From positions 1 through 64,000 of the IMG/VR virus record IMGVR_UViG_3300017987_000001: 64,000 nt of DNA, one strand, 5' to 3'. This document shows, one piece after another, positions 1,522 through 64,000 of the stretch (its first letter is position 1; each line of letters opens with the position of its first letter). Under the pieces are notes generated by a model that was not told the origin of the DNA, ran no database searches, and saw nothing but the letters and a program-made list of their open reading frames with translations. The position numbers and the translations under genes were made by a program.

Positions 1522-1523
1522 TG

Positions 1524-1703: not shown

Positions 1704-1715
1704 GTGTCTCTCCTC

Positions 1716-2053: not shown

Positions 2054-2065
2054 CAATTCCTCTCG

Positions 2066-2155: not shown

Positions 2156-2196
2156 GCAGTGCTGTATGGGTATGCTGTAGCTGGTAGGTGTGGGCT

Positions 2197-2292: not shown

Positions 2293-2307
2293 CCCCAACA
2301 AGTGACC

Positions 2308-2899: not shown

Positions 2900-2907
2900 C
2901 TGCCCGG

Positions 2908-2936
2908 ACTATATACAGTTCCGTCGGGGAAAGCAA
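2908..2936 (-). promoter_or_regulatory. sigma70-type promoter for the lipoprotein/tRNA transcript
   Basis: TTGCTT-17 nt-TATAGT, 9 nt before the ATG at 2899 (near-leaderless). Confidence 0.55.
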
Positions 2937-2953
2937 GCCCGTTGTTCAAGAAT

Positions 2954-8612: not shown

Positions 8613-8615
8613 GAA

Positions 8616-9728: not shown

Positions 9729-9731
9729 ACG

Positions 9732-10280: not shown

Positions 10281-10358
10281 CGTCTCCTTCTTCCGATCCT
10301 TCCGACGAAGCGAACCCCGCCTCGCCGGTATCGCCCGTGAAACGACCGGGACAAACAA

Positions 10359-17112: not shown

Positions 17113-17321
17113 CAGGCCCTCGAATTCAGGTTGAGGTTCAGCCACATGTCACCCTGTCCGGGGATCGTGGCAAAGCCGTGCGTCGTGGCGACCGTGATCG
17201 ACCGCCCGTTCTTGGACGGCCCGTGTCGCTCGGTCAGGTTGCACCGAATGATGAGAATGTCATCTTCGATCGTCATCCTGACGTTCGTTGGTGGCTTCTT
17301 TTCCTTCCTCGACTCCGCCAT
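17112..17321 (-). CDS. small conserved-type beta-rich protein
   Basis: GPSKNGRSITVATT.G motif. Confidence 0.6.
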   Translation of the reverse strand: MAESRKEKKPPTNVRMTIEDDILIIRCNLTERHGPSKNGRSITVATTHGFATIPGQGDMWLNLNLNSRA

Positions 17322-48137: not shown

Positions 48138-48263
48138 TCTGCCCTCCTCTCGAATAGCAGACAAAGCACGCGCTCGAAATGAGCGCATGGCGAACCGGGT
48201 CCAACATATAGTAACGCGATATGGGCCTGTTTTAACCCCGGCCTAGGGCGTTCCACGGGTGTC

Positions 48264-48291: not shown

Positions 48292-48623
48292 TAGGGACTG
48301 TCGGCAAAAACGATGGTCTTCGCGTTGACCCATTTCCGCCGCAGCAGGAAGGTTCGGAGGGCGTCGTAGTCCGACGGTTTGAAGAGGCGGTGGAAGTGCC
48401 GCACGATATCCTGATACTTCTCCCGGGTCTCCGGCCGGAGCGCCCCGCGCGTGGTTTCACGGAGCTTGGTCATGTGTGCGGTCAGCTTCAGGACCGGCCC
48501 CTTCAGCGGAGCAAGGGATGGCACGTCGTCGTAGATGCGCAGGTCGGCGAGCAGCTTGCAGATCAGCCGATCGTCGATGAGATAGATGTCGTGATGCTTT
48601 ACTGCTCGTCCTGCTTTATGCAT
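48288..48623 (-). CDS. hypothetical protein
   Basis: Last gene of the GT operon; start uncertain. Confidence 0.5.
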   Translation of the reverse strand: MHKAGRAVKHHDIYLIDDRLICKLLADLRIYDDVPSLAPLKGPVLKLTAHMTKLRETTRGALRPETREKYQDIVRHFHRLFKPSDYDALRTFLLRRKWVNAKTIVFADSPY

Positions 48624-50065
48624 GGGCGCACCACCGGAATCTGTACGTCTGTCCCGACCGGCAGGAAGTGATCCTGCGAGATCTGTCGGAACAGGTCTGT
48701 ATACGTCTCCGCCTCCTTGTCCAGCTGCTGTGCCGGGGCGATGAAGAAGCCCGGGTGGGGGTAGTGTCGACCCCCCGCTGTACGGTAGATCCTACCACAG
48801 ACAGTAGCTGGAGCCACGGCGTTGGTCATCATGCGCAGCCAGTACGCGGAGGTCGGCTTGGCTCCCTGCTCGAACCAGAACAGGTGCCCGGACGTTCCTG
48901 CCGCGATCTCCTTGATGTCCTTCACCAGCTCACCGTCCCGCCGCACGATCGGGCTATCATCCCCGCTCTCACGAATCAGCGAGACCATGGAGTCGTACCA
49001 CTCCCCCTCGGGACCGTGGAGGCAGAAGACGTGCGACGGCAATGACGGCGGCTTGGCCACGACGTTCAGCCCACGCTCGATGGTCCCCTCCTTGTAGTAG
49101 GAGAAGATCGAGTCGATGACCTTGTCGGGCGTGATCATCGCCAAGCACTTCGGGAGCGACTGCTTGCCAATCTGTACGATGTTCTGACACTTCGAAGAGC
49201 CACCAGCCAGCTTCGACTTCCAGCAGCCCTTGCCCTTGCAGCAAGATAGCTGATCCTGCGTGTGTAGAAACCGGTGCTCGACGTAGTTGTCGTCGGCCGG
49301 GATCTGCCAGTGCGGGTCGCCGACCCGCATGTTGAAGAGCCGGTTCTCGTTGTTGTACGCCTCCCACCACCATGGCTCCCGACCCCCTGCTATGACCACG
49401 CAGGGCTTGTTGAAGGCCGCAGCGATATGCATGGCCGCCGTCACCGCACAAACCACACCCTCGGCATGATAGATCAGCCGGATGAACTCGCGCAGACCGG
49501 TCTTCTTGACCATGTAGTGCGCGACCCCGTCGATCTTCTCGTGCATGATGTGGTTCTTGCTACCTCCGCCGCACTGCACCCAGTCGATCTGGTCCTTCGT
49601 AGCAGTGATCACATCCTGCCAGTACTTCCGTGCCCAGATCTTTGTTCTGAAGTCCGTCTTGCCGCCGGAGAGGAAGAGCCAGTACGGAGGCTCGATGACT
49701 GGGTTCGTCTTCTCTTCTAGGGATAGGTGCAAGTCGGGCCTGAAGTCGGTCAGCTTGATGTCCGTCTTCAGTTTGTTGTTCATGTGCTCGATGAAGCCCC
49801 AGAGGAAGTGCTTCTTCGCTTGGTTCGACTTGTGGATCAACGGGTAGTGCGCGACGAACTGCTGCCCCTTCGGTGCCGGGCGCTTCGCCTTCTGCGCGTG
49901 CTTGATGTACGGGTTGTTCCTGAAGACATGCTCGGAGCCGGGAGAGACCGTCATCGTCACGTCGAACTTCCCCGGGTGGCGGAGCGCGAGATCGCGGATG
50001 GCTGCCGACAGTACGACGATGTCACCGGGACTCTGGGTGTTACGGACAATCAGTGGGGAACCCAT
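48599..50065 (-). CDS. GT9-like (heptosyltransferase-type, GT-B) glycosyltransferase with extra C-terminal domain
   Basis: SPGD...SAAIRDL, PDLHLS, TAAMHIAAAFNKPCVVI.GGRE. Confidence 0.8.
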   Translation of the reverse strand: MGSPLIVRNTQSPGDIVVLSAAIRDLALRHPGKFDVTMTVSPGSEHVFRNNPYIKHAQKAKRPAPKGQQFVAHYPLIHKSNQAKKHFLWGFIEHMNNKLKTDIKLTDFRPDLHLSLEEKTNPVIEPPYWLFLSGGKTDFRTKIWARKYWQDVITATKDQIDWVQCGGGSKNHIMHEKIDGVAHYMVKKTGLREFIRLIYHAEGVVCAVTAAMHIAAAFNKPCVVIAGGREPWWWEAYNNENRLFNMRVGDPHWQIPADDNYVEHRFLHTQDQLSCCKGKGCWKSKLAGGSSKCQNIVQIGKQSLPKCLAMITPDKVIDSIFSYYKEGTIERGLNVVAKPPSLPSHVFCLHGPEGEWYDSMVSLIRESGDDSPIVRRDGELVKDIKEIAAGTSGHLFWFEQGAKPTSAYWLRMMTNAVAPATVCGRIYRTAGGRHYPHPGFFIAPAQQLDKEAETYTDLFRQISQDHFLPVGTDVQIPVVRPCIKQDEQ

Positions 50066-51047
50066 GCGTCTCCTCTTCAATCAACTGTAGTACCTTCTCG
50101 ACCACAACCGCCGGATTGATCCGCTCCAGCGCGAGACAGCCCTTCCGGCACGACGGCTTGCACCCGTACGAAGCGCGGCGGTAGCAGGGCATCGTGCACT
50201 CAAGTCCGACACGCTCGCGCTCTCCCGCCATGATCGCATGACACGTGCGGTAGTCACTGCCAATAGCCTCCCCGTTCGTCTGCGCGAACAGTCCCACGGT
50301 GGGCCGTTCGAGGAAGCCACCGATGTGGAAGAACGCGCTATCGCCGGTTATGATCGCGTCGCAGATCCGCACGGTCTCTACGATCATCCTCGGATCGGCA
50401 CCAATCATCGCCCATGCGTCCATCTCCTCTGCCCACTCCTGCATGAACTTCTCGTGGTGAAAGAGGATGCACTTCGCGCCCTCCAAGCGGAAGGCGTCGA
50501 CCATACCGGCAACCTGCTCCTTGCTGAGCGAGCGCCACTTCCAGTGCGACAGCGGCTGGATGCCGACCAGATATCGCTCCGGCAAGTCCTTCTGCTTGTG
50601 AAGCCACCCCGCCGTGCGCAGTACCCACTCGCGCCGACGCGGGATCTTGATGTGACACAGCGGCAGCTCCTCGCCGAGGATGTTCGACGCAACCTCACGC
50701 CACTTCTGCCAGCGGCTGTGGTTGATCGGGCTGAAGGCTGCATTCTCGTACGACTCCGCCGGGTCGTACAGGTCTACGACGCGATCGAAGTCTACGTTGA
50801 TGTCGAGGTAGGGATACCGCGCCGGGTCAGGTGGTTGACTCAGGCCACGGCGTGCGCCGGAGTTCACGACCACCAGCGGCGAGGCGACCGGATCGAGCTG
50901 CGCCCAACTAAGCAGGCTATCCTGTACGAACGTCCATACCTCCGCGTTCGGTATGGCTTCGCGAATTGAGTAGGCGATACTGAGGCGTCGGAGGACGTCA
51001 CCGATGCCTCCGCCCTCACTCAGCAGCTGGATCTTCGGGTTTCGCAT
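50040..51047 (-). CDS. GT9-like glycosyltransferase
   Basis: GGIGD, IITGDSAFFHIGG..RPTVGLF, C.PC...C...CL..I.P..V. Confidence 0.82.
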   Translation of the reverse strand: MRNPKIQLLSEGGGIGDVLRRLSIAYSIREAIPNAEVWTFVQDSLLSWAQLDPVASPLVVVNSGARRGLSQPPDPARYPYLDINVDFDRVVDLYDPAESYENAAFSPINHSRWQKWREVASNILGEELPLCHIKIPRRREWVLRTAGWLHKQKDLPERYLVGIQPLSHWKWRSLSKEQVAGMVDAFRLEGAKCILFHHEKFMQEWAEEMDAWAMIGADPRMIVETVRICDAIITGDSAFFHIGGFLERPTVGLFAQTNGEAIGSDYRTCHAIMAGERERVGLECTMPCYRRASYGCKPSCRKGCLALERINPAVVVEKVLQLIEEETHGFPTDCP

Positions 51048-51702
51048 CGTCAATAGCTCTTGTCCCAAGGGCTATACGGAGCAGCTCCATCGAAGCCCAT
51101 CGCGCCTTGTTCGGCGTACCCGGGAAGTGGATCAGTCGCGCATCGGCAACCTCGTCGTAGCTGGAGTGCACAAGACAGTGCACGTTCCCCGGCAGCCAGT
51201 GCACCTTGAAGTTCACCTGTATGAGGTGGTTCATCGGCATCTGCTCGTACGTACCGTTGTACGGATCCCTGAAGCCCATATTGAGCATGAAGCCTTTGAG
51301 CTGTTCGAATACCGGCTTCGTGTCTCGTCGCATAACGAAGAAGCCCGCATTGAACACGTGCTTGTTCCTCGCAAACAGCGGGTGCGCCGCACACATCTGA
51401 CTGACCCACCACGGGGCGTCCGGCACCGCCGCGAACGGAACATCGGGGATCTCCGGCATAGCGCGGATCGGCGCAGCATCGAAGTCGATGTACATGATGC
51501 GCTGCGTATCCTCCGGAACGACGTCCCACAGCCATGCCTTCGCGTAGGTCGGGTGGCCAAGAAGCGCCTCGTCAGGGAGCATATCCCGACGGATGATCAG
51601 CATCTTACGGTTGTTCAGCGCTTCGAACCGATCCGCGATCCACTGCTCGATCTTCGGGTACGGGTGGTCAACAGAGAGCAGCACCGGCAGGTAATCAGTC
51701 AC
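51016..51702 (-). CDS. GT8-like (GT-A) glycosyltransferase, paralog 3
   Basis: KAWLW, YIDFD (DxD), FAAVPD, FNAGFFV, EQ..MN, LIHF.G. Confidence 0.75.
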   Translation of the reverse strand: MTDYLPVLLSVDHPYPKIEQWIADRFEALNNRKMLIIRRDMLPDEALLGHPTYAKAWLWDVVPEDTQRIMYIDFDAAPIRAMPEIPDVPFAAVPDAPWWVSQMCAAHPLFARNKHVFNAGFFVMRRDTKPVFEQLKGFMLNMGFRDPYNGTYEQMPMNHLIQVNFKVHWLPGNVHCLVHSSYDEVADARLIHFPGTPNKARWASMELLRIALGTRAIDDAKPEDPAAE

Positions 51703-52366
51703 GGTCTTCCTCCTCCGGCAGAGGGTCCAGTCCGATCGTGTGTCGCAGCAAGTTCATCATGACGAGGTTCGTATCCATGGGGAGCGCGCAGAAGTGCACG
51801 GCGATCGCCGTCTTCATCATCTCGGGATCGGCGCAGAGCATGACCGTGTTCAGGTCGTGTGACATCCACTCAACCCCTACCGTCGACTGCATGATGTGGT
51901 TGAAGTGGGTCTGCAGGAACTCGCCGTTCGTGTAGTCGTCCTGCCCGTTCCACACTGCGAACGACTTGAGCTGGTCGAAGAGTGGTTGCGTGTCTCGCCG
52001 GGCCACGAAGAAGCCAACGTTGAAGAAGCACGGCAGGCTCGGGTACAGCCCAGCCATGTACTCGATCTGCATCTCCGCGTCGCGCGCCGCGACGAATGGC
52101 GCATCCGGGATCTCCGGCAGCGGGCGCAACGGGACCATATCGGTGTCGACGAACAAGACCCTGCGCGTGAACTTCGGGACCACATCCCAGATCCACGCTT
52201 GGCGATACGGTCCGTAGACCTCCTTCGCCACGTCCGGTAGGTCGTCACGCTCGACAATGTGTACGCGCTTGCCGTTCAGCCTCTCGAAGCGCTCCGCTAT
52301 CCACTGCTGCAGATCAGGATGCGGTTGGTCAATAGACAGCATGACAGGCAGGTAGTCGGAAGCCAT
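51695..52366 (-). CDS. GT8-like glycosyltransferase, paralog 2
   Basis: FVDTD, FVAARD, FNVGFFV, Q..FN, VHF. Confidence 0.75.
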   Translation of the reverse strand: MASDYLPVMLSIDQPHPDLQQWIAERFERLNGKRVHIVERDDLPDVAKEVYGPYRQAWIWDVVPKFTRRVLFVDTDMVPLRPLPEIPDAPFVAARDAEMQIEYMAGLYPSLPCFFNVGFFVARRDTQPLFDQLKSFAVWNGQDDYTNGEFLQTHFNHIMQSTVGVEWMSHDLNTVMLCADPEMMKTAIAVHFCALPMDTNLVMMNLLRHTIGLDPLPEEEDRD

Positions 52367-52383
52367 TGCTACCTCCGTCGAGG

Positions 52384-53112
52384 TTACTTAGCGTCGCGCG
52401 GATGCGCTACCCACCCGGGGGTTGGGGGGCCGTCAAGATTCCCGCCGAACGCCTCGATTCGTTCGGTGAGATGCTTGACGTATCTGTGGTAGGCCCACGT
52501 GCCGTGCTCGTTGGCGTTGAAGTTGATCATGTACGGGTAGTCGTAGTAGTACTGCTTCTCGTACGTGATATTCCAGTTCCACTCGCGTGGTAATTCGTGG
52601 ACCTCAAACCGAGACTGAATCTCTTCATTCAGCGGGGTGTAACACGCCCGGCCATCGAAGCCGAGACCACCCTGCTTCTCGAACTTGGGCGTGCCCTCCA
52701 GAAGCTTCACCTTGTCAAAGGCAACGCGCGTATCGCGATGTGCGACAAACATATGCATCTGGAAGTACTTCTGCGTCTGCTTGATGACCTCTGAGTGGTA
52801 CATCCCCTGATTGACGCGATCGTGCCGATCCATGACAGCCGCGAACTTCAGCTCCGGCAGTGGTGGTAGCGTACGGATCGGAAGCACCTTCGAGTCCAAG
52901 ACCATGATGTACTCCACGTCGTCCGGAACCATGTCCCAGACCCACAGGAAGTACCAGTACTTATTGACCTCTTTGGGGAAGTCGGCCGTCGTCAGAAGCT
53001 GCGGCCTGATATCGTTCAGCCGCTCGAACTGATCTACCGTATCCCGGGCGCGCGCTACTGACTCCTTGCGCGTCTCTGTCGTATGAACGACTACCGGGTG
53101 ATACGCGATCAT
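52384..53112 (-). CDS. GT8-like glycosyltransferase, paralog 1 (divergent DxD)
   Basis: WVWDMVP, VLDSK, FAAVMD, LPREWN shared with the other paralogs. Confidence 0.6.
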   Translation of the reverse strand: MIAYHPVVVHTTETRKESVARARDTVDQFERLNDIRPQLLTTADFPKEVNKYWYFLWVWDMVPDDVEYIMVLDSKVLPIRTLPPLPELKFAAVMDRHDRVNQGMYHSEVIKQTQKYFQMHMFVAHRDTRVAFDKVKLLEGTPKFEKQGGLGFDGRACYTPLNEEIQSRFEVHELPREWNWNITYEKQYYYDYPYMINFNANEHGTWAYHRYVKHLTERIEAFGGNLDGPPTPGWVAHPRDAK

Positions 53113-56100
53113 TATGCCGTTCCGCTCACGCAGCAGCTTCCCGAAGCGCCGGACTGACCCGACGTACCGGAGAGGCCCGACGCACCGGAGAGGCCCGAGG
53201 CGCCCGACAACCCGGAAGCGCCCGACAAGCCCGATTCTCCCGACTGACCGGATGCACCAGACTGGCCCGACTGTCCGGACTGACCCGACTGACCCGACTG
53301 GCCAGACTCACCGGACTCACCGGACTCACCCGATTGGCCAGACTCACCGGACTCACCCGACTGGCCGGACTCTCCGCCACCGCCACCGGGGACCGGCGGG
53401 CAACAGAGAATCACCGGCTCAGGCGGAACCGGGATGTCACAGTCTTCGACTAGCGCACCAGTGATGCGACGGACGTACGGGATCTCGCATCCTGCCCGCC
53501 GCCAGTATGCGGGCATCGCGAATTCGACGGGCAGGTACGCGAACACCTCGGCTGCGTACGTGTACGGATCGTCGACGTCGCTGCGAGTCCGTATCTTGAG
53601 GGTGGTGCGGTAATCCTCCTCGTTGTCAGAAAATGGTACTTCTGTCGGGAAGAGTGTCAACACCTGATTCTCGTAGTTGGGACTGTCGTCGTTGATCGTG
53701 TACTGCAGCCAGTACGGAATCGGGTATGCCGGGTCTCCCGTGATGACCGAGATTGCTTCCTTGCCCGTGCCGCGCACCAAGTTGAAGAGTACGTACTGAG
53801 GAAGCGGGATCTGCCAGTCCGCTGTCGGCTCGAAGTAGATCGATCGCGGGTTGTAGTCGTAAAGTTCCGACTCTTCCCAGTTCACCGTGATGGTGACGGT
53901 AGCCGGGATGATTGTCGACAGTTGCGTCTGCCCCTCCGCGTACGCATTCGCTGCGGACACGTCGATGTCCTGCGAGTACGACGACGCAGGAGGATCAGCG
54001 AGGCCGGTCATCACTCCGATATCGACAGTTAGGTCTACGTACTGGTCGTTCCCCGAACCGCCGTAGCTGTCCACGGACAACCACGTGCCGAGGCTGCTCA
54101 CAGCGATCGGGTCGAGGATGAAGTCCCCGATGTTCGTCACTGGAACGCGGATCGTCAGCGACGTGTCCTCCCCGGCAATGAACGTGGCAGACACATCTTC
54201 GACGCCAAGCACCGGCGCCTGAATGTACAGGTTGACCGGCACGTCCAGCTCGATCGCGCACCCGGGCGATGACGACGAGTGGAAGGATGACGAGCTGTCC
54301 GAATTGTCGGGGGCGCAGATCTTGAAGGTGCCTTGATAGAGTCCCTGTGGCACCGTCACGCCAGCCACCGTCGGGCGTACGTGCAGGTAACCGACCCGGT
54401 CCTGATAGCGCGACTCGGTGAACGACGCGGTCAGCCACGCCGGGACGTCCTGCACCGTGATCGGTGAGCCGATCGGGACGCTCTCCGGCCAGTACTTGTC
54501 ATACACCGGGATGATCTGCTCATCCGGCTGAACGCCAAGCGGCGTGACGAACTGGATCGGCAGGTTGTCAATCTCGAACGTGGGCGCTGGTTCGATGTCG
54601 TAGCGAACGTAGTACTTGCGCGGGGTGTTCAGCGCGTTCGGGACCGAGATCTGAATGATCGCCTCGTACGGTGAGTTCTCGGGAGCCAGCTCCGTCGTGT
54701 TCGGTTGGAAGTTGAGGTACTGGTCGTCACCGCTTCCGATGCGTGTCAGGTCAAGCCAACCGGGTTTCGATACGACCGCGTCCAGCAGCGTGTCGGTCGC
54801 CCCCGGTTCGGGTGTGACGTGGATCGTCTCCATGGGCGGTGCGGGATCGCCGTAGACCGCGTCAAACTGGATGATCGGCTGCGGCGGCCACGGGTTCCTG
54901 AAGTACGTACCAACCCGCGTCGGCGTGTCCGGACAGCCGTTGAAGTCAGTACCGCTGCTGGAGATTCCGGTACAGGCGGCAACAGTGTTGGTATCGGAGC
55001 CAGCCTCCCAGTTCTTTCCATCGATACCATTCTTTGACTTCAGCGTCGTGTTAACGTCTGAAAAGCGCGCATACTCAGGCTTCGGCGTAGTTTCAGCAGT
55101 GAGCGTTACGTCGTTTGCCGCTGCAGCGATCCATGGCCGTGCTGTTAGGGTAAGCGGGCAACGAGTTCCTTGTCCTTGCGCGTCGATCTCCTTGGCGGCA
55201 ATCCACGCATAACCCGGACCCTCGCTAGGATTCGATCCGTCGTTGGGCAAATGCACAAGAAAGTCACCGCTTGTCGCCTTGAACGACAGCTTGTTGCGCA
55301 CGTACAACTGAGCACCAGTCTTCGCGATCGTCATGTCCTGCGGCGCGATACCGCCAGCCCCGGCAACATCACGAATCGTGAGGTCGTAGAAGTTGTAGAC
55401 CGATGAGTCACCCGTCCCGAACGTATAGGTGCGGCCGTGCGTCAGTGCCGCGTGCAGCTCAACGAGGCTGCCGTTGGCGCAGTCGATCTCGACGTTGGTG
55501 AAGTCGACGTTCGAGCCGCCGGTTGCATCCTCGCTGAGCGTAAGCAGCGCACCGGCCTCGACCGAGATTGTGATGTCGGCCGTGGTAGCCCCGAAGCGCT
55601 GGAAGTCCCTGCACTTCACGCCCTCCTGTAGTGCAATACCTCCGATAGGTGGCTTTACCACGATGTCGACAGTCTTACCAGCCGCCCCGGTATGGGAGAC
55701 TCTTAGTTCAGCGCTGATGTCGAAGTTGCCGTGGAAGTTGATCGTACCGCCGTCTGCAGCTACGACTCCAGAGCCAACAGAGAGGTAGTTCGTCACCTCA
55801 GCAACGAAGACGTGCTCCGTTGGGTCATCGCCCTGATCGTACGGATACAGATCGATCGTCTGGCCAGTCCCGTTCAACAGGCAAGCTATTATATTACTCC
55901 TAATCGTGCCTCGCGGCAGCCGCACCGTGACTGCAGCATTGGGATACGCAGCGAACATGCTCAGCGCGAATGAGTTGATCCTGTTCGTAGACGTGTCGAA
56001 CGGCTCGCCACCGCCGATATTGCGCATGTCGCTGATGTCGCCGTCCTGACCGCTGACGAGGAAGTTCCGCGTCCCGTCCGCGTCCGGAGCGATCTGGTAC

Positions 56101-56297: not shown

Positions 56298-57367
56298 CAG
56301 ACATCGACCTCACAAATACCTTCATCCTCGAAGCGAACCACAATACGATTCTTGTCGGGCTGCGGGTCAATCACGACCCCCGGACCGCCGACAAGCTGCA
56401 ATTGATCCACTCCAAAGCCAACACCATTCAGAGCGAACACGAGGCCATCACACGTCACACAGCTGTTCGGGCTGAGATCGCCCGTTGGCGTCATGCGTAG
56501 ATCCTCGCACTGCATCCCTTCACCTTCGTCCACGCCTGCACCAAGCGTAATTGCGTTCTGCAGCTCGTCCACCTCAACCAAGAAATTGTATCCAGCCTTG
56601 ATCGCTACGTCACCAAGGAACAGTCCGGCTGGGAGTGGCGTGCGCTCTGGCGCGGAAACATCCGCTGGCTCAGGCTCAAGCGGATCCTCGCACGAAGCTA
56701 TTGATGAGGATGAAGATGACGATAAGGATGGCGATGAAGACGAGGATAGCGATGAAGACGAGGATAGCGATGACAAGCTGCTTGAAGAACTTGAATCGCA
56801 CGGGCATTCCGGTGGACACGGTCGTGGTTCGTTTGCCACGCTGATTCCCGCTACATGTGCCAGCATGTCCGACTGAATGACTCCCGGCTCGACCTGTGGT
56901 TGCAACACGAAGATACCATCGTCCACGCCGAAGGTAGCAACGATGATATTCACATTGCCGGTGGTCATGAAGCCCAGCCCAAGCGCGGGGTTCTCCGCTC
57001 CCGGCTGCGCGAGATCATCAGTGATTCGTGTCGGGATGGCGTACTGCGTAATGAAATTGCCGTCCGCAATATTGAACTCGAACACGAACTGGTAGCACTT
57101 TAGCGGATCCCACGTTGCCGCTGCGCCATACGCTACGCGAAACGCGAAGTACAGCTTATCCGCTGTTGCCTTCCACGCGTCGAGGTAGACCGTATCGCGC
57201 CCCGGCTCGAAGTTGCTATCAACCCCAAGCGTGAATCCTGCATCAGCGAAGATCTCGTTACCGGGCGGCTCAATCAGCCCAGCCCCGCCAAACATTGTGA
57301 AGTCCGAGCCAGCGAGAAGCGGGTAGGCGCGCTGGGTATTCTGTGTGAGCCAATCAGTCTGAGGCAT
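56297..57367 (-). CDS. virion structural protein, paralog family B, with long poly-Ser tract
   Basis: DWLTQNTQRAYPL; CPCD-S-rich-C. Confidence 0.75.
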   Translation of the reverse strand: MPQTDWLTQNTQRAYPLLAGSDFTMFGGAGLIEPPGNEIFADAGFTLGVDSNFEPGRDTVYLDAWKATADKLYFAFRVAYGAAATWDPLKCYQFVFEFNIADGNFITQYAIPTRITDDLAQPGAENPALGLGFMTTGNVNIIVATFGVDDGIFVLQPQVEPGVIQSDMLAHVAGISVANEPRPCPPECPCDSSSSSSLSSLSSSSSLSSSSSPSLSSSSSSSIASCEDPLEPEPADVSAPERTPLPAGLFLGDVAIKAGYNFLVEVDELQNAITLGAGVDEGEGMQCEDLRMTPTGDLSPNSCVTCDGLVFALNGVGFGVDQLQLVGGPGVVIDPQPDKNRIVVRFEDEGICEVDV

Positions 57368-58206
57368 TACGTCCCCCTGAGCCGACGCTCGCCAAGCATT
57401 TCGATCTTCACCGTCGCTACCTTGAGCGACGTCTCACCCTCAAGGTGCTCCGTGACATCCGACCCCGACTCGGACCCCGGCGTGATACGCAGGATCGGCG
57501 TCAGCGACTGGTTGCTGCCTACGATGAGCTGAAAATTTCCCTTCCCGTCCGGTGTAATGCCGTTGAGTGTCTTGATCGGGCAGTACGGCCGCAGCGCTGG
57601 CAGCTCCTCGTTCGCGTCCGATTCGGCACACAGCTTTCGATTGGCAAACGGGTCACCAATCACGTCGATACGTAGGTCGGAGCCATCACGACGGATCACC
57701 ACGCCATCCTCGCCCACCAGCCACACGTTCCCCGTCACCAGCTCGCCCGACGGGAGAATGAAGCCACGAACACCGGCCTCGGGCTGAGGTACGTTCACTG
57801 CCGCCGCGAACTCGGTCTGGCTGAGCAGGAACGTGTACACACCAACATTGACACCTGAGAAGGACTGCAATGCCGTCTTGCTGGAAACCAATACGCCAGC
57901 AGGTCGCCCGTACGTATCAAAGAAGGCAAGCTGTCCATTCTCCGGGATATCGGTCAGCTCAAAGGATGCGGTAGCTAGCTCGTCTGTACCTGTCGCACGA
58001 ATCGCGAACGTGATCTCGTTGGTGTCCTTGGTGATCCGGCTCAGGTACAGCTGCTCGTTGCCGCCGATCGGGTACAGCCGCCCATCCACGAACAGATCAT
58101 CGGGGATATCGAGCGTGCCATTCGACGCAGGTACGTGGTCCGCGAAGGGGTACTTTCTCCGCGAGTTCGTGTCACGCCAGTCGTGGAAGCGAACACCGAG
58201 AGCCAT
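57367..58206 (-). CDS. virion structural protein, paralog family B
   Basis: DWRDTNSRRKYPF; IKTLNGITPDGKGN. Confidence 0.75.
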   Translation of the reverse strand: MALGVRFHDWRDTNSRRKYPFADHVPASNGTLDIPDDLFVDGRLYPIGGNEQLYLSRITKDTNEITFAIRATGTDELATASFELTDIPENGQLAFFDTYGRPAGVLVSSKTALQSFSGVNVGVYTFLLSQTEFAAAVNVPQPEAGVRGFILPSGELVTGNVWLVGEDGVVIRRDGSDLRIDVIGDPFANRKLCAESDANEELPALRPYCPIKTLNGITPDGKGNFQLIVGSNQSLTPILRITPGSESGSDVTEHLEGETSLKVATVKIEMLGERRLRGT

Positions 58207-58208
58207 AG

Positions 58209-59876
58209 CTAGATCCCAAAGACACCGAAATTATCGTAGTGCGCTTCACATCCTACAGCGCCCACACCACATATGCCAGATAGATCGAAACCAGTGACGA
58301 GTTTGGCCGTATTGAACGGATCCGTGGGGTTCGGGAACCCCTGTCCGCTCCTGTTCCAGTACCACTCAACCGTAACAAGCTTCAGCTCGCTGGCCGCCTC
58401 AACCGGCTCAACTCGCACATCCACACGCACGTCGACATCGATCACTCCGTCCGAGGAGATGATGCCAGCTCCGGCGTCCATGTCCGGAGCGCCCGATAGG
58501 TCGAACTGGTAGCCGAACTCCAGCCCATACGGCCAAGCATCGAGCGAGCTTCCGAGATCTCCGGTCTTGTGCCCGAAGTAGAGCAGACCATTCGTAGCGC
58601 GCTCCGTATTGACGCTGACTCCGGCGTACCAGAAGTCGTCGAGGCCCTTGTAGCCGAAGATCACGTGGCCGTTCGCAGCAGCGCTGAACGGGCGGATCAC
58701 GCTGAACGTGCGGTATCCGATCGTGTCCACCTTCGGTACGCGTGGGACCACGATCACCGACGGGGCGTCGCTCTCCGTACAATAGAGCCGTGAGATGCCG
58801 GAAGTAGCCTCCGACGGTTCGACCTCCTTGATCGACCAGATCCCCTGCTGCGGTATCATCCATTCGAACGTGCGCTCCGGATCGGTGAAGTCGTCGAAGT
58901 ACGAGTCGTACACCGGCTCCGGGGTTGCGGATGACGACGACGGAGGGATCTCGGATGACGAGGAGTCCGACGACTCGCTGGACGATGGCTGTTCCTCGCA
59001 CAGATCGTTCGGGTCGTAGCGCTCCGGGTCGAACTCGGTACATACGTCGTCCAGCCCGATAGGGACATCAACCACAAGCCCTGCGTCGACGCCCGTAAGC
59101 TGCGCGTCGAGACCCTCAAAGATGATGTCCACGTTCCCATCACAGTCAGGCGGCACGCCATTGATCGTCAGGAACGCCTTACCCTGCTCGCACGTCTCAT
59201 CTTCGGGGCGTGTCCCGCAGGCTCCGGCATACTCCCGGAGCTTCTCCGCAGCCTCCGTGGTCAGATCGAGGCCGATGGTAATCACGTTGCGCTTGCGTCC
59301 GTTGATCGTGCGCACACTCTTGTTGATCACGATGTCGTCGCCCGCGAAGAGCTGTACGAGGCCGGTCAGCTCCGTGAGGCGCCCGGCCTTCTTGAGCGAG
59401 GATACCGGGTAGTCCCGATAGCTTCGCGCGGCTTTGGCGTCGAGCACCGATTGGCTAGCCTCCGTGAACCGGAACGCGAGATTGTCGTTCTCCTCCACGT
59501 CGCTGCCGAACGCCACCCAGCCCGCAACACCCGGGTAGAGCGGCGTGATCGGGTAATTTTTGAACGCGTCCAACGGTCTCGTCACCACGATCGAGGCGAG
59601 CGGTACGAATCCAGCGCCGGATGAGGACGACTGCCCGGCGGAGCTGAAGGGGTCTTCGTCGGTTGCGAGGAACGTAACGCTGACCAATCCGGGCGTCACG
59701 ACCAGCGAGCTGACGAACACGAAGCGTCCGGCCGACTCGGGTACCATGATATTGGCATCCGCAATCAGGCCATCAGGCATGACGGCTCCGGTCGCCGACT
59801 GCTTCGACGCGTAGTCGTGCAGCGGGTAGTTCCGCAGCTCGTTCGTATTCGACCAGCCTGTGAATACCGTAGGCAT
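58209..59876 (-). CDS. virion structural protein, paralog family B, with lectin-like C-terminal domain
   Basis: GWSNTNELRNYPL; LTINGVPPDCDGN; Ser-rich linker. Confidence 0.75.
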   Translation of the reverse strand: MPTVFTGWSNTNELRNYPLHDYASKQSATGAVMPDGLIADANIMVPESAGRFVFVSSLVVTPGLVSVTFLATDEDPFSSAGQSSSSGAGFVPLASIVVTRPLDAFKNYPITPLYPGVAGWVAFGSDVEENDNLAFRFTEASQSVLDAKAARSYRDYPVSSLKKAGRLTELTGLVQLFAGDDIVINKSVRTINGRKRNVITIGLDLTTEAAEKLREYAGACGTRPEDETCEQGKAFLTINGVPPDCDGNVDIIFEGLDAQLTGVDAGLVVDVPIGLDDVCTEFDPERYDPNDLCEEQPSSSESSDSSSSEIPPSSSSATPEPVYDSYFDDFTDPERTFEWMIPQQGIWSIKEVEPSEATSGISRLYCTESDAPSVIVVPRVPKVDTIGYRTFSVIRPFSAAANGHVIFGYKGLDDFWYAGVSVNTERATNGLLYFGHKTGDLGSSLDAWPYGLEFGYQFDLSGAPDMDAGAGIISSDGVIDVDVRVDVRVEPVEAASELKLVTVEWYWNRSGQGFPNPTDPFNTAKLVTGFDLSGICGVGAVGCEAHYDNFGVFGI

Positions 59877-59877
59877 G

Positions 59878-61323
59878 CTACACCGATATCGAAGCCGAGC
59901 CGCTTAGTGCCTCGGCATTAGACCCAGAGGTGATAACGGTGACCTCCACCGTCTCGCCCGTGATGTCACCCAGCGTGAACTGTCCGACCCAATACAGCAT
60001 CGTATGCGGCTGCACCTCCATGTTGTTCACTTCGATCACCGGCTCCCAGTCCGTGGACATGTCGGGATTGAGTGGCATTGCCGCAGAACTCGAACTGACC
60101 ACGCGCCCGGAGTTCGCTACGTAGCTGAGTGACTTACCTTCAATCTCGTCGAACGTCAGGTTGAACGTCATCGGATCCGTATCCCAGTCGGTAGCCGGAT
60201 TGACCACGTTCTCCGTGTCATTCAGGTATGCGATCGTGACCGTGACGACCTGCGAGTCGTTCACCGCCAGCGATAGGATCGACGGTCCGCTGCGGTTCTT
60301 GTATGTGTCAATGAGGCTGGTGACTGCGCCGCGCAGCGCATTGATCTGGTCTGACACGACCTTCGCGCGATCCCAGATGCCCTGCAGGTGCAGGTACGTA
60401 TCGACGTACGCCTCGCACGAGCAGCACGGGCCGCAGCCGTTCTTGATCTGCAGCTCATTCGGCTTGAGCGTCGCGTTGTAGCGGATCCCGTGGGAGCCGT
60501 CCGCCGACACAGGCTCTCCTTCGAGCGCGCGCTCCAGCCAGTAGCACTCGATCGGCTTCAGCTGTGTGTCGCCCTGCTGGTTCGGCCCAACACCGTTGAG
60601 CGTCAGGAGGTAAAGCGAGCCGGGGCACAGGAGGTACTGGCCGCGTCCGGCCCCCGGGACCGCGTTGATGGCAACGCGCGTCTGCGGACGCCCCTCCTGC
60701 ACCGTAAAGGTCTCGGCTTGGAACCCCGTCGTCTCTTCCTCCTGCTGCTCAATCTCCATGTTGAAACCAGCCTGCAAAACCAGCTCTTCGCCCCTATCGG
60801 CCACCAGCTCCAGCGTGCTCCCGCGCTTCCAGTAGACGCGGCGAACCTCGTTCGGTCCCTGCTTCACGACCGACGGCTGGAACGGGACGTCTCCGTAGAG
60901 ATCCTCCATCTGGATGTAATAGGTGCCCGCGAGATCCTCCACCGCCGACGTAGGGAAGACCATGCGAACGGACGTGGTCTCACCTGCCGCCATGTCCGTC
61001 TCATCGGCGAACCAGTCGACGACGATCCACGTGCCATACGCGTAGGCTTTCGCATACGCCGTACCTACAATGGCAACCTCCTCGCCAGCGGTCTCCCACT
61101 CCATGCGGATCTCTGCAGTGGTGAGGGTAGCGAAGTCGGCAGATGCCGAGCGCAGGTCGACCTTCGTCAGCTTCAGCGTGTCGTCGCGCTGGTCGACCGT
61201 CCTGATCTGAGCACCGGCGCAGAACGGCGCCACGTCCCCCGCAGCGGACAGGCGTTCGATCTGAACGCTCTCCTTGAAGGGGTACGGAATCTGAAGGTTG
61301 CTCGACAGGAACTCAAATCCCAT
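59878..61323 (-). CDS. virion structural protein, paralog family B
   Basis: EFLSSNLQIPYPF; LTLNGVGPN; PCCSC. Confidence 0.75.
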   Translation of the reverse strand: MGFEFLSSNLQIPYPFKESVQIERLSAAGDVAPFCAGAQIRTVDQRDDTLKLTKVDLRSASADFATLTTAEIRMEWETAGEEVAIVGTAYAKAYAYGTWIVVDWFADETDMAAGETTSVRMVFPTSAVEDLAGTYYIQMEDLYGDVPFQPSVVKQGPNEVRRVYWKRGSTLELVADRGEELVLQAGFNMEIEQQEEETTGFQAETFTVQEGRPQTRVAINAVPGAGRGQYLLCPGSLYLLTLNGVGPNQQGDTQLKPIECYWLERALEGEPVSADGSHGIRYNATLKPNELQIKNGCGPCCSCEAYVDTYLHLQGIWDRAKVVSDQINALRGAVTSLIDTYKNRSGPSILSLAVNDSQVVTVTIAYLNDTENVVNPATDWDTDPMTFNLTFDEIEGKSLSYVANSGRVVSSSSAAMPLNPDMSTDWEPVIEVNNMEVQPHTMLYWVGQFTLGDITGETVEVTVITSGSNAEALSGSASISV

Positions 61324-61326
61324 AGC

Positions 61327-62265
61327 TTACCCTGAGCACGTTCCGAGTGTGGTCATCAGCGTCTGCATGATCGCTACGACGCCTTCCAGTCTGGAGGCGA
61401 GGTTCTCCAGCGTCTGGACCTGATCACGCATCCTGTTCTGATCATCCACGAGCGTTTCGAGTTCGGGGCATCCGCAGCACGGCTTCGAGCAGACGTCCGA
61501 GATCTCTACCGCGTTCTCATCGGCTTTCGCCTCAGGGACAAGACAGTCGTCGCCAAGGAGATTGATGTTCCCCAGCGCATCCGGTGGGACATTGTTGATC
61601 GTGCGAATAGCCGGAGTCGCGGCTGCCTCCCCCTCGCAGACACAATCGGCGATCGTACCCTCGCCGTCGATTGCGCTGAACTGCAGAACGGTCACGCCGT
61701 TGAAGTTGGACTTCGTGATGCGGAAGTTCGAGCCAGCTTCGAAGGCGATATCGCCCTGATACAACTCTCCGAGATCGTCGCCGTCGAGAATGCGCATCCC
61801 GGCAACGCCCCGGATATCTGGAACGACAACCGTCGATTCGATACGTCCGCCCGCCAGTGCGAACGCGAAAACGCCCGGAGTCAGCAGGACAGTGTCGAGT
61901 GTTCCGATCACGACCTTGCCCGTCACGCCTTCGAAGTCATCGTCACCCTCGATCGTGAACGTATCGAATCGCTCGAACGTCGAGGTCTGGATCGATACGC
62001 GCCCGAGCAACGACGCTTGCGTACCCGTCCAGTACGAGATCTCCATCACCACGCCAGTACCGAAAACCGACAATTGCGACAGGTAGAAGTTCGCGGGGCT
62101 GTAGTTGAGGCCGCCGTTCACCGAGATCACCATGTCGGCGAGGAAATTGTTCGGTAGCGTGTATGTTGACGTCGTGTCCTGCCGCGTGGCAGCCTCGCTG
62201 AGCGGATACGCGCGCAGCTCGTTCTGATTCAGCCAGCCGACGTTAACAACGCCCTGCGCAGGCAT
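61327..62265 (-). CDS. virion structural protein, paralog family B
   Basis: GWLNQNELRAYPL; IRTINNVPPD..GN; PCCGC.EL plus coiled coil. Confidence 0.75.
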   Translation of the reverse strand: MPAQGVVNVGWLNQNELRAYPLSEAATRQDTTSTYTLPNNFLADMVISVNGGLNYSPANFYLSQLSVFGTGVVMEISYWTGTQASLLGRVSIQTSTFERFDTFTIEGDDDFEGVTGKVVIGTLDTVLLTPGVFAFALAGGRIESTVVVPDIRGVAGMRILDGDDLGELYQGDIAFEAGSNFRITKSNFNGVTVLQFSAIDGEGTIADCVCEGEAAATPAIRTINNVPPDALGNINLLGDDCLVPEAKADENAVEISDVCSKPCCGCPELETLVDDQNRMRDQVQTLENLASRLEGVVAIMQTLMTTLGTCSG

Positions 62266-62277
62266 AGGAACTCCTCG

Positions 62278-63999
62278 TTACGTTTTGACGACGCGTGCTC
62301 CGAAGCGCATGATGCCGAAGCCGTCGGACGGGCCGCCAGTGCCATCCCATCCAATTGTGAAGTCCACTGTATCGCCCATCGCCACGCTGAAGAAGTCCGT
62401 TTCTGCCGGACCATACTCACCTGCGGCAAGGGTCAACCCCGGCGTCCAGTCGCCACCGCCGCCTTCGATATCCGTGTCCGCAACCGGAAGGGCGGTAGCT
62501 GCTGTCGGCTGCGCGTAGCGACGGTACGTCGCTTCCAGCGCGGGGATGGCCCCGGCAGAGCGGCCTACGAACCAGAACCACAGCTGCAGCTCTAGTGGGC
62601 TGGACAGACCGAGGCGGGGGATCTCGACCCGCCCACGCATGCTCGAAGGACGCCCTGCCGGGAAATGGAGGTAATAGAACAGATTCGCACTGTCGTATGC
62701 CTCAAGGATGTCATTCAGCGCGACGATCGTGATCTGGTATTCTTTCGGATCCCCGGTTGTGTCTTCGAGCTGGACCTGCAGATCTCCATGGTAGAAGCCT
62801 TCGTCGTCTACCGACCAATCGGTATCTTCCGTGCCGACGCCGACCACTTCCGCGCCCGTACCGGCCTTCAGCCCGATCACGGCCGGACCGCGCTGGACCT
62901 TGTCGGTGCTGAAGCTCTTGACTACGGCGATGCCCGCAACAGGCTCTTCGACCTCCAAGAGGCTGAGGTCGAGGTAGCTGAAGATCCTGCCTGCGCTGGC
63001 CTCATTGCCGTCACAGTCCACGTACCGAATCGGCGTGGTGTCGCTGAGCGGAGACAGCTCGTTGACCACGTTCGGATCGGTCTTGTAGACCATCTTCGAG
63101 TACCACAGAATGAGCCGCTTCTCGTCGAGCCACGTGTCGTCGAGGCCGAGGTACTCAAGCGGCGTGTGACAATGGTACTCCGGCTCCCCGGAAGAGGTCG
63201 AGGGGTCCGGGCCGAACGACTGCGAGGATGAGGACGACTCACACTCGGGGTAGCTCGGCGCCCACGGAGCCGCACCGTAACAGTTCTCCATCCACCACAG
63301 CCCACTGCAGTCGATGATCGCCGTCGGGCGCTCTGTGGCATTGATCGGCAGTCCGTAGCCGTTCTGCTCCAGATAGACGCTGCCACTCGGGTTCGGCGGC
63401 CACACCTTCTGCAGTTCCGGATGCTGCGCGAGGTTGTAGCCGAACTTGGCACCGTCCGGAGCTGCGCCTTGGAACAGCGGGTGATCGGCCGGTAGCCAGC
63501 CCTGCTGGGTCGGGTCCGGGTCGACCACCTGATGAACTTGGCCGTCCCCCCGCACGACGCAGTTCGCCTCGCCTGCGGGCTTGGCGTACAGCTCAAACTT
63601 GTAGTGCACGTGATCTTCGAGCAGGTCACGCGGCGTCGGCATGAAGTGGAACGTGTCGTCGCCACGATTGTAGAGCACGTAGACGCTGATGGCGGGCTTC
63701 TGCAGCGTCAGCTTACCCGGCGTCTGCATCGATAGGAAGTACGGACCTACCTCGTCCGGACCGCCGTTGACGATCGCGTTCGTCAGGTCGAAGTCGCGCA
63801 GCGTACCAGCCGTCAGGATGTGGCCCGCTTCCGTACCAGTCTTCGCGTACACCATACCGACAACGAAGGCGGACGGTGCGAGCATGTACCAGCCCGCCGT
63901 CTGGTTGAACTCGACGGCAGCCAGCGCGCGCTTGTACCCGTTGTAGGTCTCGTCGAAGTAGACGAGATCGCCCGGAGCCGCGTCGGCTTCGATCTTCTG
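62278..63999 (-). CDS. virion structural (tail/baseplate-like) protein, 5'-partial
   Basis: Frame stays open to the window end; Ser-rich linker ECESSSSSQS. Confidence 0.7.
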   Translation of the reverse strand, partial: QKIEADAAPGDLVYFDETYNGYKRALAAVEFNQTAGWYMLAPSAFVVGMVYAKTGTEAGHILTAGTLRDFDLTNAIVNGGPDEVGPYFLSMQTPGKLTLQKPAISVYVLYNRGDDTFHFMPTPRDLLEDHVHYKFELYAKPAGEANCVVRGDGQVHQVVDPDPTQQGWLPADHPLFQGAAPDGAKFGYNLAQHPELQKVWPPNPSGSVYLEQNGYGLPINATERPTAIIDCSGLWWMENCYGAAPWAPSYPECESSSSSQSFGPDPSTSSGEPEYHCHTPLEYLGLDDTWLDEKRLILWYSKMVYKTDPNVVNELSPLSDTTPIRYVDCDGNEASAGRIFSYLDLSLLEVEEPVAGIAVVKSFSTDKVQRGPAVIGLKAGTGAEVVGVGTEDTDWSVDDEGFYHGDLQVQLEDTTGDPKEYQITIVALNDILEAYDSANLFYYLHFPAGRPSSMRGRVEIPRLGLSSPLELQLWFWFVGRSAGAIPALEATYRRYAQPTAATALPVADTDIEGGGGDWTPGLTLAAGEYGPAETDFFSVAMGDTVDFTIGWDGTGGPSDGFGIMRFGARVVKT

Positions 64000-64000
64000 G

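Follow-up and report, generated by a model that had tools for sequence, protein, structure and literature searches.

Organization of the fibre module and its glycosyltransferase genes

The window considered here is a 64,000-nucleotide stretch, positions 1 to 64,000 of the IMG/VR record IMGVR_UViG_3300017987_000001, which we read as part of a complete 207,857-bp jumbo phage from marine sediment and seawater. All genes between 46 and 64 kb lie on the minus strand, and the segment 48.6-64 kb shows a distinctive organization: an array of fibre-module genes is followed, at the 3' end of the operon, by three GT8-like paralogs and two GT9 enzymes. The genes overlap or abut from the collagen-like fibre gene through both GT9s, and the stop of the fibre gene overlaps the start of the next gene in a TAATG at 53112. 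No terminator-like site appears between the cassette genes and the fibre gene, the next ones being a weaker site at 48189-48167, at the Ro60 start, and a strong one at 45634-45611.

The fibre module comprises seven proteins, all on the minus strand. The first encodes a 629-aa protein (62278-64000, running on to 64167 beyond the window) with the pattern C-E-SSSSS...STSS...H-C; its orthologs occur in GT9-positive genomes (38% identity), with an expanded Ser tract in that of the genome labeled G005. It is followed by a 312-aa protein (61327-62265; paralog B) with an N-terminal W-x-N-x-N-E-x-R-x-Y-P domain and no Ser tract, and by a 481-aa protein (59878-61323) with only a weak SSSS run lacking an adjacent Cys. 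The 555-aa paralog D (58209-59876) has Ser tracts (SSSSGAG; C-EEQP-SSSESSDSSSSEIPPSSSS), which are found at the same position in most orthologs (those from the relatives' loci L002, L006 and L008) but are absent in L007 and L009. The 279-aa paralog E (57367-58206) has no Ser tract, whereas the 356-aa paralog F (56297-57367) has the longest one, at residues 192-222 (56702-56794): 24 of its 31 residues are Ser, it is bounded by C-P-C-D and S-C, and all six Ser codons are used. The ortholog of this protein in the related locus L004 has a Cys-flanked Ser tract at the same place. The last member is a 1061-aa tail-fibre-like protein (53112-56297) with an internal C...SDSSSSFHSSSSPGC tract and a C-terminal collagen-like array (53133-53375) of 26 G-x-S triplets plus G-S-C, with a CC pair on each side. 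The array recovers the Pfam Collagen profile (PF01391; E 1.5e-11, 44.3 bits against a cut-off of 27.2) with 27 uninterrupted triplets, but is atypical in having no proline and Ser at the Y position in 26 of the 27; the X position is Q in nine, E in seven, A in five, L in four and T and S in one each.

Six of these seven proteins have no Pfam or PHROG hit, only the collagen part of the 1061-aa protein hits tail-fibre PHROGs, and a structural model of the N-domain (pLDDT 70) finds nothing in structure searches; their virion role is inferred from their position between a baseplate wedge gene (phrog_6) and the collagen-like fibre. Ser tracts next to Cys occur in four of them, namely the 629-, 555-, 356- and 1061-aa proteins. 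Whereas 0.65 runs of four or more Ser are expected by chance in the whole proteome, eleven proteins have one, ten from the gene calls plus the 356-aa protein, whose ORF was missed by the gene caller. All but one of these, a likely spurious plus-strand ORF, lie on the minus strand between 53 and 108 kb.

Of the GT8-like paralogs, paralog 1 (51016-51702; 228 aa) recovers the Pfam GT8 profile (PF01501, E 9e-7, 29.1 bits against a cut-off of 24.3) and retains D-F-D and the H-F...K..W motif. Paralog 2 (51695-52366; 223 aa), which retains D-T-D and H-F, and paralog 3 (52384-53112; 242 aa) have no Pfam hit but are clear paralogs of it in BLASTP searches (E 7e-59 and 2e-20). A profile of this family hits GT8 structures weakly (3tzt, 5e-3). 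Paralog 3, which is translationally coupled to the fibre gene, has D-S-K in place of the DxD and N-F, with Asn in place of the C-terminal His, and is probably inactive. Of the two GT9 enzymes, the conserved one (48599-50080; 493 aa, or 488 aa from the likely start at 50065) recovers PF01075 at 1.2e-12 (48.1 bits against 22). The second, divergent one (50040-51068; 342 aa, likely start at 51047) is marginal in Pfam (23.2 bits against 22), but is supported by the ESM Atlas (feature score 0.97, structure TM 0.77 to viral GT9 clusters) and has G-I-G-D and a Cys-rich segment before the last helix.

The observation made in the first-pass annotation, of five tightly linked glycosyltransferase genes behind a G-x-S-ending fibre, with poly-Ser tracts usually next to Cys in four of seven structural proteins, is thus confirmed. 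It had also pointed to a UDP-glucose dehydrogenase at 17260-18150 (minus strand); however, this NDP-sugar dehydrogenase is truncated, with only the N-terminal and central domains and no UDP-binding domain, and its link to the cassette is doubtful.

Sequence and structure features of the conserved GT9

The 493-aa GT9 belongs to a large family with over 1,400 homologs, many of them on viral contigs of 160-550 kb. It is predicted to comprise two domains: a GT9 (GT-B) domain with a Cys cluster (residues 1-330) and a GT-A-like domain without a conserved DxD (residues 337-488). An AlphaFold2 model (pLDDT 93) aligned with VIA-align is closest to solved GT9 structures (Z 24.7 to 3tov, 22.3 to WaaF, 21.3 to TibC and 21.2 to WaaC), with the next family at Z 11. 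TibC is a heptosyltransferase that modifies serines of proteins (PMC4358343), and its catalytic base D110, K230 and R286 align with the invariant or near-invariant D15, K142 and R192 of the phage family. D15, in a P-G-D motif, is nearly invariant in 114 sequences and aligns with the G-D of both WaaC (D13) and TibC, whereas TibC T226 and W305 are replaced by D138 and H213. A family-conserved Cys cluster (C275/C276, C281, C293, C307) lies in an insertion before the last helix, which WaaC lacks and which is placed like the iron finger of TibC: C281 and C293 align with the TibC iron ligands C358 and C370, with the same x11 spacing, but the other two of the four ligands do not align.

The tie of the fold similarity to TibC with that to the LPS heptosyltransferases WaaC and WaaF (Z 21-22) means that the fold does not identify the acceptor. 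The TibC/Aah model TIGR04414 scores only 15.6 bits (E 0.0058) against a cut-off of 200, and the N-terminal β-barrel of TibC (residues 1-97) is absent, with the phage protein starting at the catalytic domain and its model aligning from TibC residue 95 onward. A rival possibility is that the transferases act on host envelope glycans such as LPS core or capsule, thereby masking receptors, blocking superinfection or preventing progeny from sticking to debris, with the poly-Ser tracts being unmodified flexible spacers. GT9 and GT8 are the two families that build the LPS inner and outer core, the best sequence hits of both GT9s are WaaC and WaaF, and the phage carries sugar-nucleotide enzymes, methyltransferases and sulfotransferase-like genes typical of polysaccharide loci. 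Further, jumbo-phage glycosyltransferase clusters have been read as surface-polysaccharide modifiers (PMC7824862), and poly-Ser linkers averaging about 40 residues and about 80% Ser exist in marine gammaproteobacterial carbohydrate-active enzymes with no known glycosylation (PMC2699552). Against this, the Cys-knuckle insertion is shared, in its position and in two of the four ligands, with the protein-acting TibC and not with WaaC, and the GT9 is translationally coupled to late structural genes. It is also a conserved core gene at the end of the fibre module across phages of 160-550 kb, whereas surface-modification genes are usually accessory and variable. We regard this alternative as unlikely, though it is the strongest of the rivals.

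Association of the GT9 with poly-Ser proteins across phages

In relatives, the fibre array and this GT9 are kept while the genes between them change: L004 has two GT8s, a methyltransferase and a sulfotransferase-like gene, whereas L002 has no GT8. The co-occurrence of the transferases with Ser tracts across related phages had been suggested as a check on the initial proposal, and the comparison yielded a statistical association, which partly reflects shared ancestry. Dense poly-Ser proteins occur in 21 of 49 de-duplicated GT9-anchored loci (32 of 899 ORFs) as against 0 of 79 terminase-anchored control loci (0 of 1333 ORFs; Fisher p 6e-11), although the control samples head and packaging neighborhoods rather than fibre modules. 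They lie nearer the GT9 than expected by chance (permutation p 0.0065), but strict adjacency is not significant and 28 of the 49 GT9 loci show no dense poly-Ser protein within 10 kb. Conversely, 41 viral loci with poly-Ser ORFs had no such GT9 within the retrieved flank, which argues against exclusivity and is also consistent with the spacer alternative. In a divergent locus the poly-Ser proteins are bona fide tail proteins (phrog_1101, 1.6e-47; phrog_1082, 1.4e-65).

A second form of Ser tract is terminal. ORFs ending in four or more Ser plus Ala occur in 9 of 54 GT9 loci, but in only 1 of 79 terminase loci and 0 of 118 poly-TCN loci (p 0.0013 and 1.8e-5), and are often directly beside the GT9. 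The genome labeled G000 has two such proteins just downstream of its major capsid gene. A terminal tail cannot be an interdomain linker, and the fact that these tails track the GT9 again disfavors the spacer alternative. At the level of whole genomes, ORFs with a run of five or more Ser number 25 of 823 in four GT9-positive genomes and 3 of 601 in three GT9-negative relatives (p 3.7e-4). However, this contrast compares only two clades and the fibre array itself is absent from the GT9-negative clade, so the signal partly reflects shared ancestry.

Domain fusions offer further contextual information. The GT9 is fused to GT4 domains in four loci, while in one locus, L034, it is fused to an FkbM methyltransferase plus an Erv1/Alr sulfhydryl oxidase, an enzyme that acts on protein thiols, and is abutted by a poly-Ser gene. 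While the fusion to a protein-acting enzyme speaks against an envelope-glycan target, it also counts in favor of another alternative, in which the Ser tracts and tails serve a different chemistry (phosphorylation, O-acylation, thioether or disulfide stapling with the adjacent Cys, or a degradation or sorting tag) or a purely structural role, with the neighboring transferases being unrelated to them. Cys flanks most tracts and CC pairs bracket the collagen-like array, which fits inter-chain disulfide knots in trimeric fibres, and C-terminal Ala is a common feature of bacterial degradation tags. However, no kinase, dehydratase or cyclase was found beside the tracts, the only enzyme class recurring next to them is glycosyltransferase, and no Erv1 was found in this phage, albeit in a search without a positive control. 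We consider this alternative improbable. Least likely of all is glycosylation of phage DNA, as in hypermodified-base systems: although phage glycosyltransferases are classically DNA-modifying (cited in PMC12619734), the genes sit in the structural operon rather than with replication or nucleotide-metabolism genes, no hydroxymethylase context was seen in the window, and no GT9 or GT8 enzyme is known to glycosylate DNA.

Functional interpretation

We propose that the region is the 3' end of the baseplate and tail-fibre operon to which a glycosylation cassette is attached. In this view, late in infection in the host cytoplasm, the clade-conserved 493-aa GT9 would transfer a first sugar, from host ADP-heptose or another NDP-sugar, onto serine hydroxyls. 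The acceptors would be exposed poly-Ser tracts and C-terminal poly-Ser-Ala tails of fibre and head-decoration proteins, with the Cys-knuckle insertion perhaps helping to grip the protein substrate, as it does in TibC. The variable enzymes between the fibre gene and this GT9, here a second GT9, two intact GT8-like enzymes and one degenerate GT8-like copy, would extend the glycan, while other phage clusters would supply further transferases (GT32-like, GT4, GT2), modified nucleotide sugars, and methyl and possibly sulfate groups. In this phage a GT32-like gene and a GT4 gene sit inside the structural region. The likely result would be stiffened, protease-resistant, hydrophilic linkers and tails on the virion surface.

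The gene content, predicted folds, conserved residues, synteny and statistical association are established by our analysis, whereas the acceptor, the donor, the order of the steps, the benefit and the transfer of sugar to serines itself are inferences from comparative evidence alone: there is no isolate or proteome, and no RNA runs contain this phage. Its lack of heptose-pathway genes also counts against this reading. Virion protein O-glycosylation is the best available reading, but one held tentatively and short of even odds. The interpretation offered in the first-pass annotation, that the Ser tracts and the collagen Y-position Ser are dedicated glycan acceptors giving a mucin-like or LPS-mimicking coat, is partly supported: the placement of the transferases, the association of the conserved GT9 with poly-Ser proteins and Ser tails across divergent phages, and the features shared with TibC favor it, but the LPS-mimicking component rests only on the family names and has no support. 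Moreover, Ser or Thr at the collagen Y position is common in bacterial collagens anyway (PMC8968730), so the G-x-S array is not by itself an acceptor signature.

A more far-reaching possibility, compatible with the evidence but more tentative still, is that a large, phage-specific branch of GT9, related in mechanism to TibC, recognizes homopolymeric serine as a portable glycosylation tag, in the form of either internal Cys-bracketed tracts or C-terminal poly-Ser-Ala tails. This would let jumbo and other phages coat fibre and head-decoration proteins with self-made, lineage-variable glycans. If so, virion protein glycosylation would be a widespread and genomically predictable trait of environmental phages rather than a mycobacteriophage curiosity.

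Relationship to known glycosylation systems

The closest precedent is presented by the bacterial autotransporter heptosyltransferases (BAHT) TibC/Aah (PMC4358343), with which the 493-aa GT9 shares the predicted GT-B fold, the catalytic Asp, the Lys and Arg that bind the sugar nucleotide, and a Cys-rich, putatively metal-binding knuckle before the last helix, in which only two of the four ligands align. The proposed acceptor is likewise many serines on a fibrous surface protein modified in the cytoplasm. However, beyond the missing β-barrel and the sub-threshold profile score, the viral enzyme differs in its Cys arrangement (CC-x4-C-x11-C-x13-C against C-x2-C-x15-C-x11-C), in having His in place of TibC W305, as in WaaC, and in its extra GT-A-like C-terminal domain, and its proposed acceptor is disordered poly-Ser rather than a β-helix repeat. 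The LPS core heptosyltransferases WaaC and WaaF, with the GT8 core transferases, represent the same two CAZy families and the same fold, but their NCBIfam equivalog scores are far below cut-off (at most 31 bits against 135-185), and the phage enzyme differs from them in the Cys insertion, the GT-A-like domain and the virion-operon context.

Among phages, glycans are reported at the C-termini of mycobacteriophage capsid and tail-tube subunits, with the phage encoding its own glycosyltransferases (Freeman 2023, as cited in PMC12619734). The cassette described here is likewise phage-encoded and linked to structural genes, and the Ser-Ala tails occupy a comparable terminal position. The host phylum and the target proteins differ, a homopolymeric Ser acceptor has not to our knowledge been described in that system, and virion glycosylation is experimentally shown there but inferred here.

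In the serine-rich repeat adhesins of Gram-positive bacteria, long Ser-rich repeats are densely O-glycosylated in the cytoplasm by GtfA/GtfB and extended by further enzymes including GT8, with the catalytically dead paralog GtfB assisting the active one, a possible parallel to the degenerate GT8 copy here; SdgA/SdgB similarly act on Ser-Asp repeats (PMC3794999). The initiating enzymes there are GT4 rather than GT9, and the substrates are exported by an accessory Sec system. The glycosylated collagen-like spore proteins, BclA of Bacillus and BclA3 of C. difficile, the latter modified by SgtA, combine a G-x-(Thr/Ser) array on a surface fibre with a dedicated glycosyltransferase (PMC8968730, PMC7157674), and the L004 ortholog of the fibre has a (GPT)n array like BclA. 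In our case Y is Ser in all but one triplet, there is no proline and the transferase families differ; Thr at position Y is also common in bacterial collagens with no glycosylation. Finally, the polyserine linkers of Cellvibrio, Saccharophagus and Teredinibacter enzymes (PMC2699552) are tracts of about 30-45 residues at about 80% Ser in extracellular proteins of marine bacteria. Those are interdomain linkers of secreted enzymes with no known modification, whereas the tracts described here are Cys-flanked, sit in predicted virion proteins, also occur as terminal tails and co-occur with a GT9.

Genomic context and gene order

The window is the first 64 kb of a complete virus record of 207,857 bp with direct terminal repeats and a GC content of about 60%. 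The same DNA was detected in marine sediment and seawater metagenomes and in no RNA run. The genome encodes a large terminase (phrog_675, 1e-54), a major capsid protein 31% identical to that of Salmonella phage Arash and 38 tRNAs, but no near relative was recovered among cultured phages by megablast or by tblastn with the 481-aa protein of the fibre module. Three of the tRNA genes, at the window start (327-2155), are tRNA-Ser (anticodons GGA, CGA and GCT), whereas another, at 173136-173210, has a CUA anticodon of the amber-suppressor type; the GT9 ortholog of the related genome G007 has one in-frame TAG. Rfam searches of the window returned only tRNAs.

All genes between 46 and 64 kb lie on the minus strand. 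Upstream, beyond the window, are a baseplate wedge gene (66401-68056; phrog_6, 7e-15) and two further genes, followed by proteins of 629, 312, 481, 555, 279 and 356 aa, none of which has a Pfam or PHROG hit. The 312-, 555-, 279- and 356-aa proteins share an N-terminal domain of about 90 residues with the motif W-x-N-x-N-E-x-R-x-Y-P, and orthologs of each occur in related phages, indicating that this is an old paralogous array. The predicted model of the shared domain (pLDDT 70) found nothing in BFVD, the ESM Atlas gave only weak fibre-like leads for the 312-aa protein, and a locus search with the 279-aa paralog alone found nothing. The 1061-aa fibre protein that follows ends in a proline-free collagen-like array of 26 G-x-S triplets plus G-S-C, with a CC pair on each side, and its stop codon overlaps the start of the first GT8-like gene (TAATG at 53112). 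Three GT8-like paralogs, a 342-aa GT9 and a 493-aa GT9 (48599-50080) then follow with overlaps or gaps under 20 nt. No terminator-like site appears between these cassette genes and the fibre gene, the next being a weaker one at 48189-48167 and a strong one at 45634-45611. The weaker site coincides with the start of a minus-strand gene (46470-48188) for a Ro60/TROVE plus vWA RNA-binding protein homolog (phrog_850, 1.7e-35), two genes downstream of the GT9, after a 111-aa ORF; no Y-RNA-like Rfam hit was found in the window. The first-pass annotation, which reported five glycosyltransferases next to Ser-rich structural proteins, described a real arrangement.

Serine tracts

Ser tracts flanked by Cys occur in the 629-, 555-, 356- and 1061-aa proteins. 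The longest, at 56702-56794 in the 356-aa protein, has 24 Ser in 31 residues and uses all six Ser codons. Whereas 0.65 runs of four or more Ser are expected by chance in the whole proteome, eleven proteins have one, and all but one, a likely spurious plus-strand ORF, lie on the minus strand between 53 and 108 kb. Codon use inside the tracts is shifted: TCA accounts for 22% there against 7% elsewhere, and AGC for 7% against 26%. The mixed, AT-richer Ser codons of the long tract drop local GC3 (56676-56819) enough that a composition-based gene caller rejected the true 356-aa ORF and called a spurious 47-aa ORF instead, which constitutes an annotation hazard for such genes; with the 356-aa protein, the ten other proteins that have a Ser run make up the eleven. 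As evidence against a role as glycan acceptors, poly-Ser linkers exist in marine bacterial enzymes with no known glycosylation (PMC2699552), and Thr at collagen position Y is common in bacteria (PMC8968730), so the G-x-S array is not by itself an acceptor signature.

The predicted glycosyltransferases

The 493-aa protein has more than 1,400 homologs, many on viral contigs of 160-550 kb. Its structural model (pLDDT 93) has two domains, of which residues 1-330 form a predicted GT9 domain, with Z 24.7 to 3tov, 22.3 to WaaF, 21.3 to TibC and 21.2 to WaaC, the next family scoring Z 11, while residues 337-488 form a GT-A-like domain (Z about 10) with no conserved DxD. PDB sequence searches with the two GT9 proteins gave only weak WaaC and WaaF hits. 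The catalytic Asp and two nucleotide-sugar ligands of TibC and WaaC are conserved. A family-conserved Cys cluster lies in an insertion before the last helix, at the place where TibC carries its four-Cys iron finger and where WaaC has no such insertion; two of these Cys align with TibC C358 and C370 with identical spacing, whereas the other two TibC ligands do not align (PMC4358343). The fold does not separate protein-acting from LPS-acting GT9 enzymes. Action on host envelope glycans is the main rival to action on virion proteins, although we consider it less likely.

The 342-aa protein is a separate, divergent GT9, which hhalign could not link to the 493-aa family. Of the three GT8-like genes one passes the Pfam cut-off and the other two are its paralogs; the copy beside the fibre gene has lost the second Asp of the DxD and the C-terminal His, and is probably not catalytic.

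Elsewhere in the genome, the structural region holds a GT32-like gene, a GT4 gene, a weak methyltransferase hit below the Pfam cut-off and a weak sulfotransferase-like gene. A second glycan-biosynthesis cluster (146414-157866) holds two NAD-dependent epimerase/dehydratases, FkbM and Methyltransf_24 methyltransferases, a sulfotransferase-like gene, a full-length NDP-sugar dehydrogenase (470 aa), a GT2 and a weak third GT9-like gene, and lies next to a 924-aa gene of unknown role. In contrast, the UDP-glucose dehydrogenase that the first-pass annotation placed at 17260-18150 lacks its UDP-binding domain. Searches for heptose-pathway genes in this phage found none. The window further encodes, on the minus strand, a DUF2201 protein (vWA-like plus metallopeptidase-like) next to an ATPase gene (phrog_1297) at 34105-36734, which looks like a MoxR/vWA-type pair of unknown role, and an SbcC-like SMC/ABC ATPase at 2954-5056 (phrog_77, 3e-37).

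Comparative associations of the GT9 family with poly-Ser proteins

In the loci of two relatives, L002 and L004, the fibre array and the 493-aa-type GT9 are kept, but the genes between the fibre and that GT9 differ, and the other cassette genes of L004 have no homologs in this phage. Cys-flanked Ser tracts recur at the same positions, while the L004 fibre has (GPT)n instead of (GxS)n. Of 49 de-duplicated GT9-anchored viral loci, 21 hold a dense poly-Ser protein within 10 kb (32 of 899 ORFs), against none of 79 terminase-anchored loci without the GT9 (0 of 1333 ORFs; Fisher p 6e-11), leaving 28 of the 49 GT9 loci with no dense poly-Ser protein nearby. The poly-Ser genes lie closer to the GT9 than permutation expects (p 0.0065), although strict adjacency is not significant. 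The association is also not exclusive: in a reverse test, of the 80 listed viral loci with nine consecutive TCN codons (118 stretches matched), 41 had a poly-Ser ORF and none had a member of this GT9 family within the fetched flank, which we count against exclusivity. In a divergent GT9 locus, L051, the poly-Ser proteins are clear tail proteins.

The GT9 is fused to GT4 domains in four loci, and downstream of the GT9 in three loci, L043, L044 and L048, proteins of 900-1150 aa, made largely of (SSSSSSSSI)n repeats hundreds of residues long, are encoded right after a GT9-GT4 fusion. In L034, a 70-kb viral contig, a 1172-aa protein (7793-11311) fuses the GT9 to an FkbM methyltransferase and an Erv1/Alr sulfhydryl oxidase, with a poly-Ser gene abutting it, which suggests cytoplasmic disulfide formation coupled to glycosylation of virion proteins. 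A search for Erv1 in the present phage was negative, but its control was likewise silent.

A further signature is presented by proteins ending in poly-Ser plus a final Ala. It occurs in 9 of 54 GT9 loci, against 1 of 79 terminase loci (a 63-aa ORF, probably spurious) and 0 of 118 poly-TCN loci (p 0.0013 and 1.8e-5, respectively). The tails use mixed codons and all three stop codons, and the genes often sit directly beside the GT9, including in unrelated phage loci. This phage has two such proteins just downstream of its major capsid gene, on the minus strand at 104538-107900 of the complete genome (positions 538-3900 of the extracted locus L066): an 81-aa protein ending ESCCSSSSA, and a 998-aa protein with two N-terminal repeats, an internal poly-Ser linker and about 45 P/T/G-rich ten-residue repeats (TGPTGDPSxI), ending GETSSSSSSA. 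A terminal tail cannot be an interdomain linker.

At the level of whole genomes, five Arash-like genomes lack the GT9 family and five relatives of this phage have it. ORFs with runs of five or more Ser number 25 of 823 in four GT9-positive genomes and 3 of 601 in three GT9-negative ones (p 3.7e-4). However, the fibre array is also confined to the GT9-positive clade, and this contrast is therefore not independent of ancestry.

Functional interpretation and relationship to known systems

Taken together, the gene order, Ser tracts, conserved residues, predicted folds and statistical associations are observations of this analysis, whereas transfer of sugars to virion proteins, and hence the acceptor, is inferred from them. 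The best-supported reading, which we propose only tentatively, is a virion protein O-glycosylation system built around a conserved, TibC-like phage GT9 with a variable extension cassette. The interpretation in the first-pass annotation, that the Ser tracts and collagen-position Ser are dedicated glycan acceptors forming a mucin-like or LPS-mimicking coat, is supported in part; the LPS-mimicking coat was considered and dropped for lack of any specific evidence. As far as our literature searches reach, neither this GT9 branch nor the Ser-Ala tail has been described, and they found no account of phage GT9 enzymes acting on fibres or of poly-Ser virion glycosylation. If this reading is right, a sequence-recognizable enzyme family plus a simple acceptor motif would let glycosylated virions be predicted from metagenomes, would explain a puzzling class of poly-Ser virion proteins, and would offer a compact enzyme-and-tag pair for engineering glycosylated proteins or phages.

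Virion protein glycosylation is established for a few mycobacteriophages and for giant eukaryotic viruses, but is otherwise almost unexplored in phages. Despite the conserved residues shared with TibC, the 493-aa protein is not a member of the TibC/Aah family, as it scores 15.6 bits against a cut-off of 200 and has no N-terminal barrel. The Ser-Ala tails, for their part, recall the C-terminal glycans of mycobacteriophage capsid and tail-tube subunits (cited in PMC12619734).
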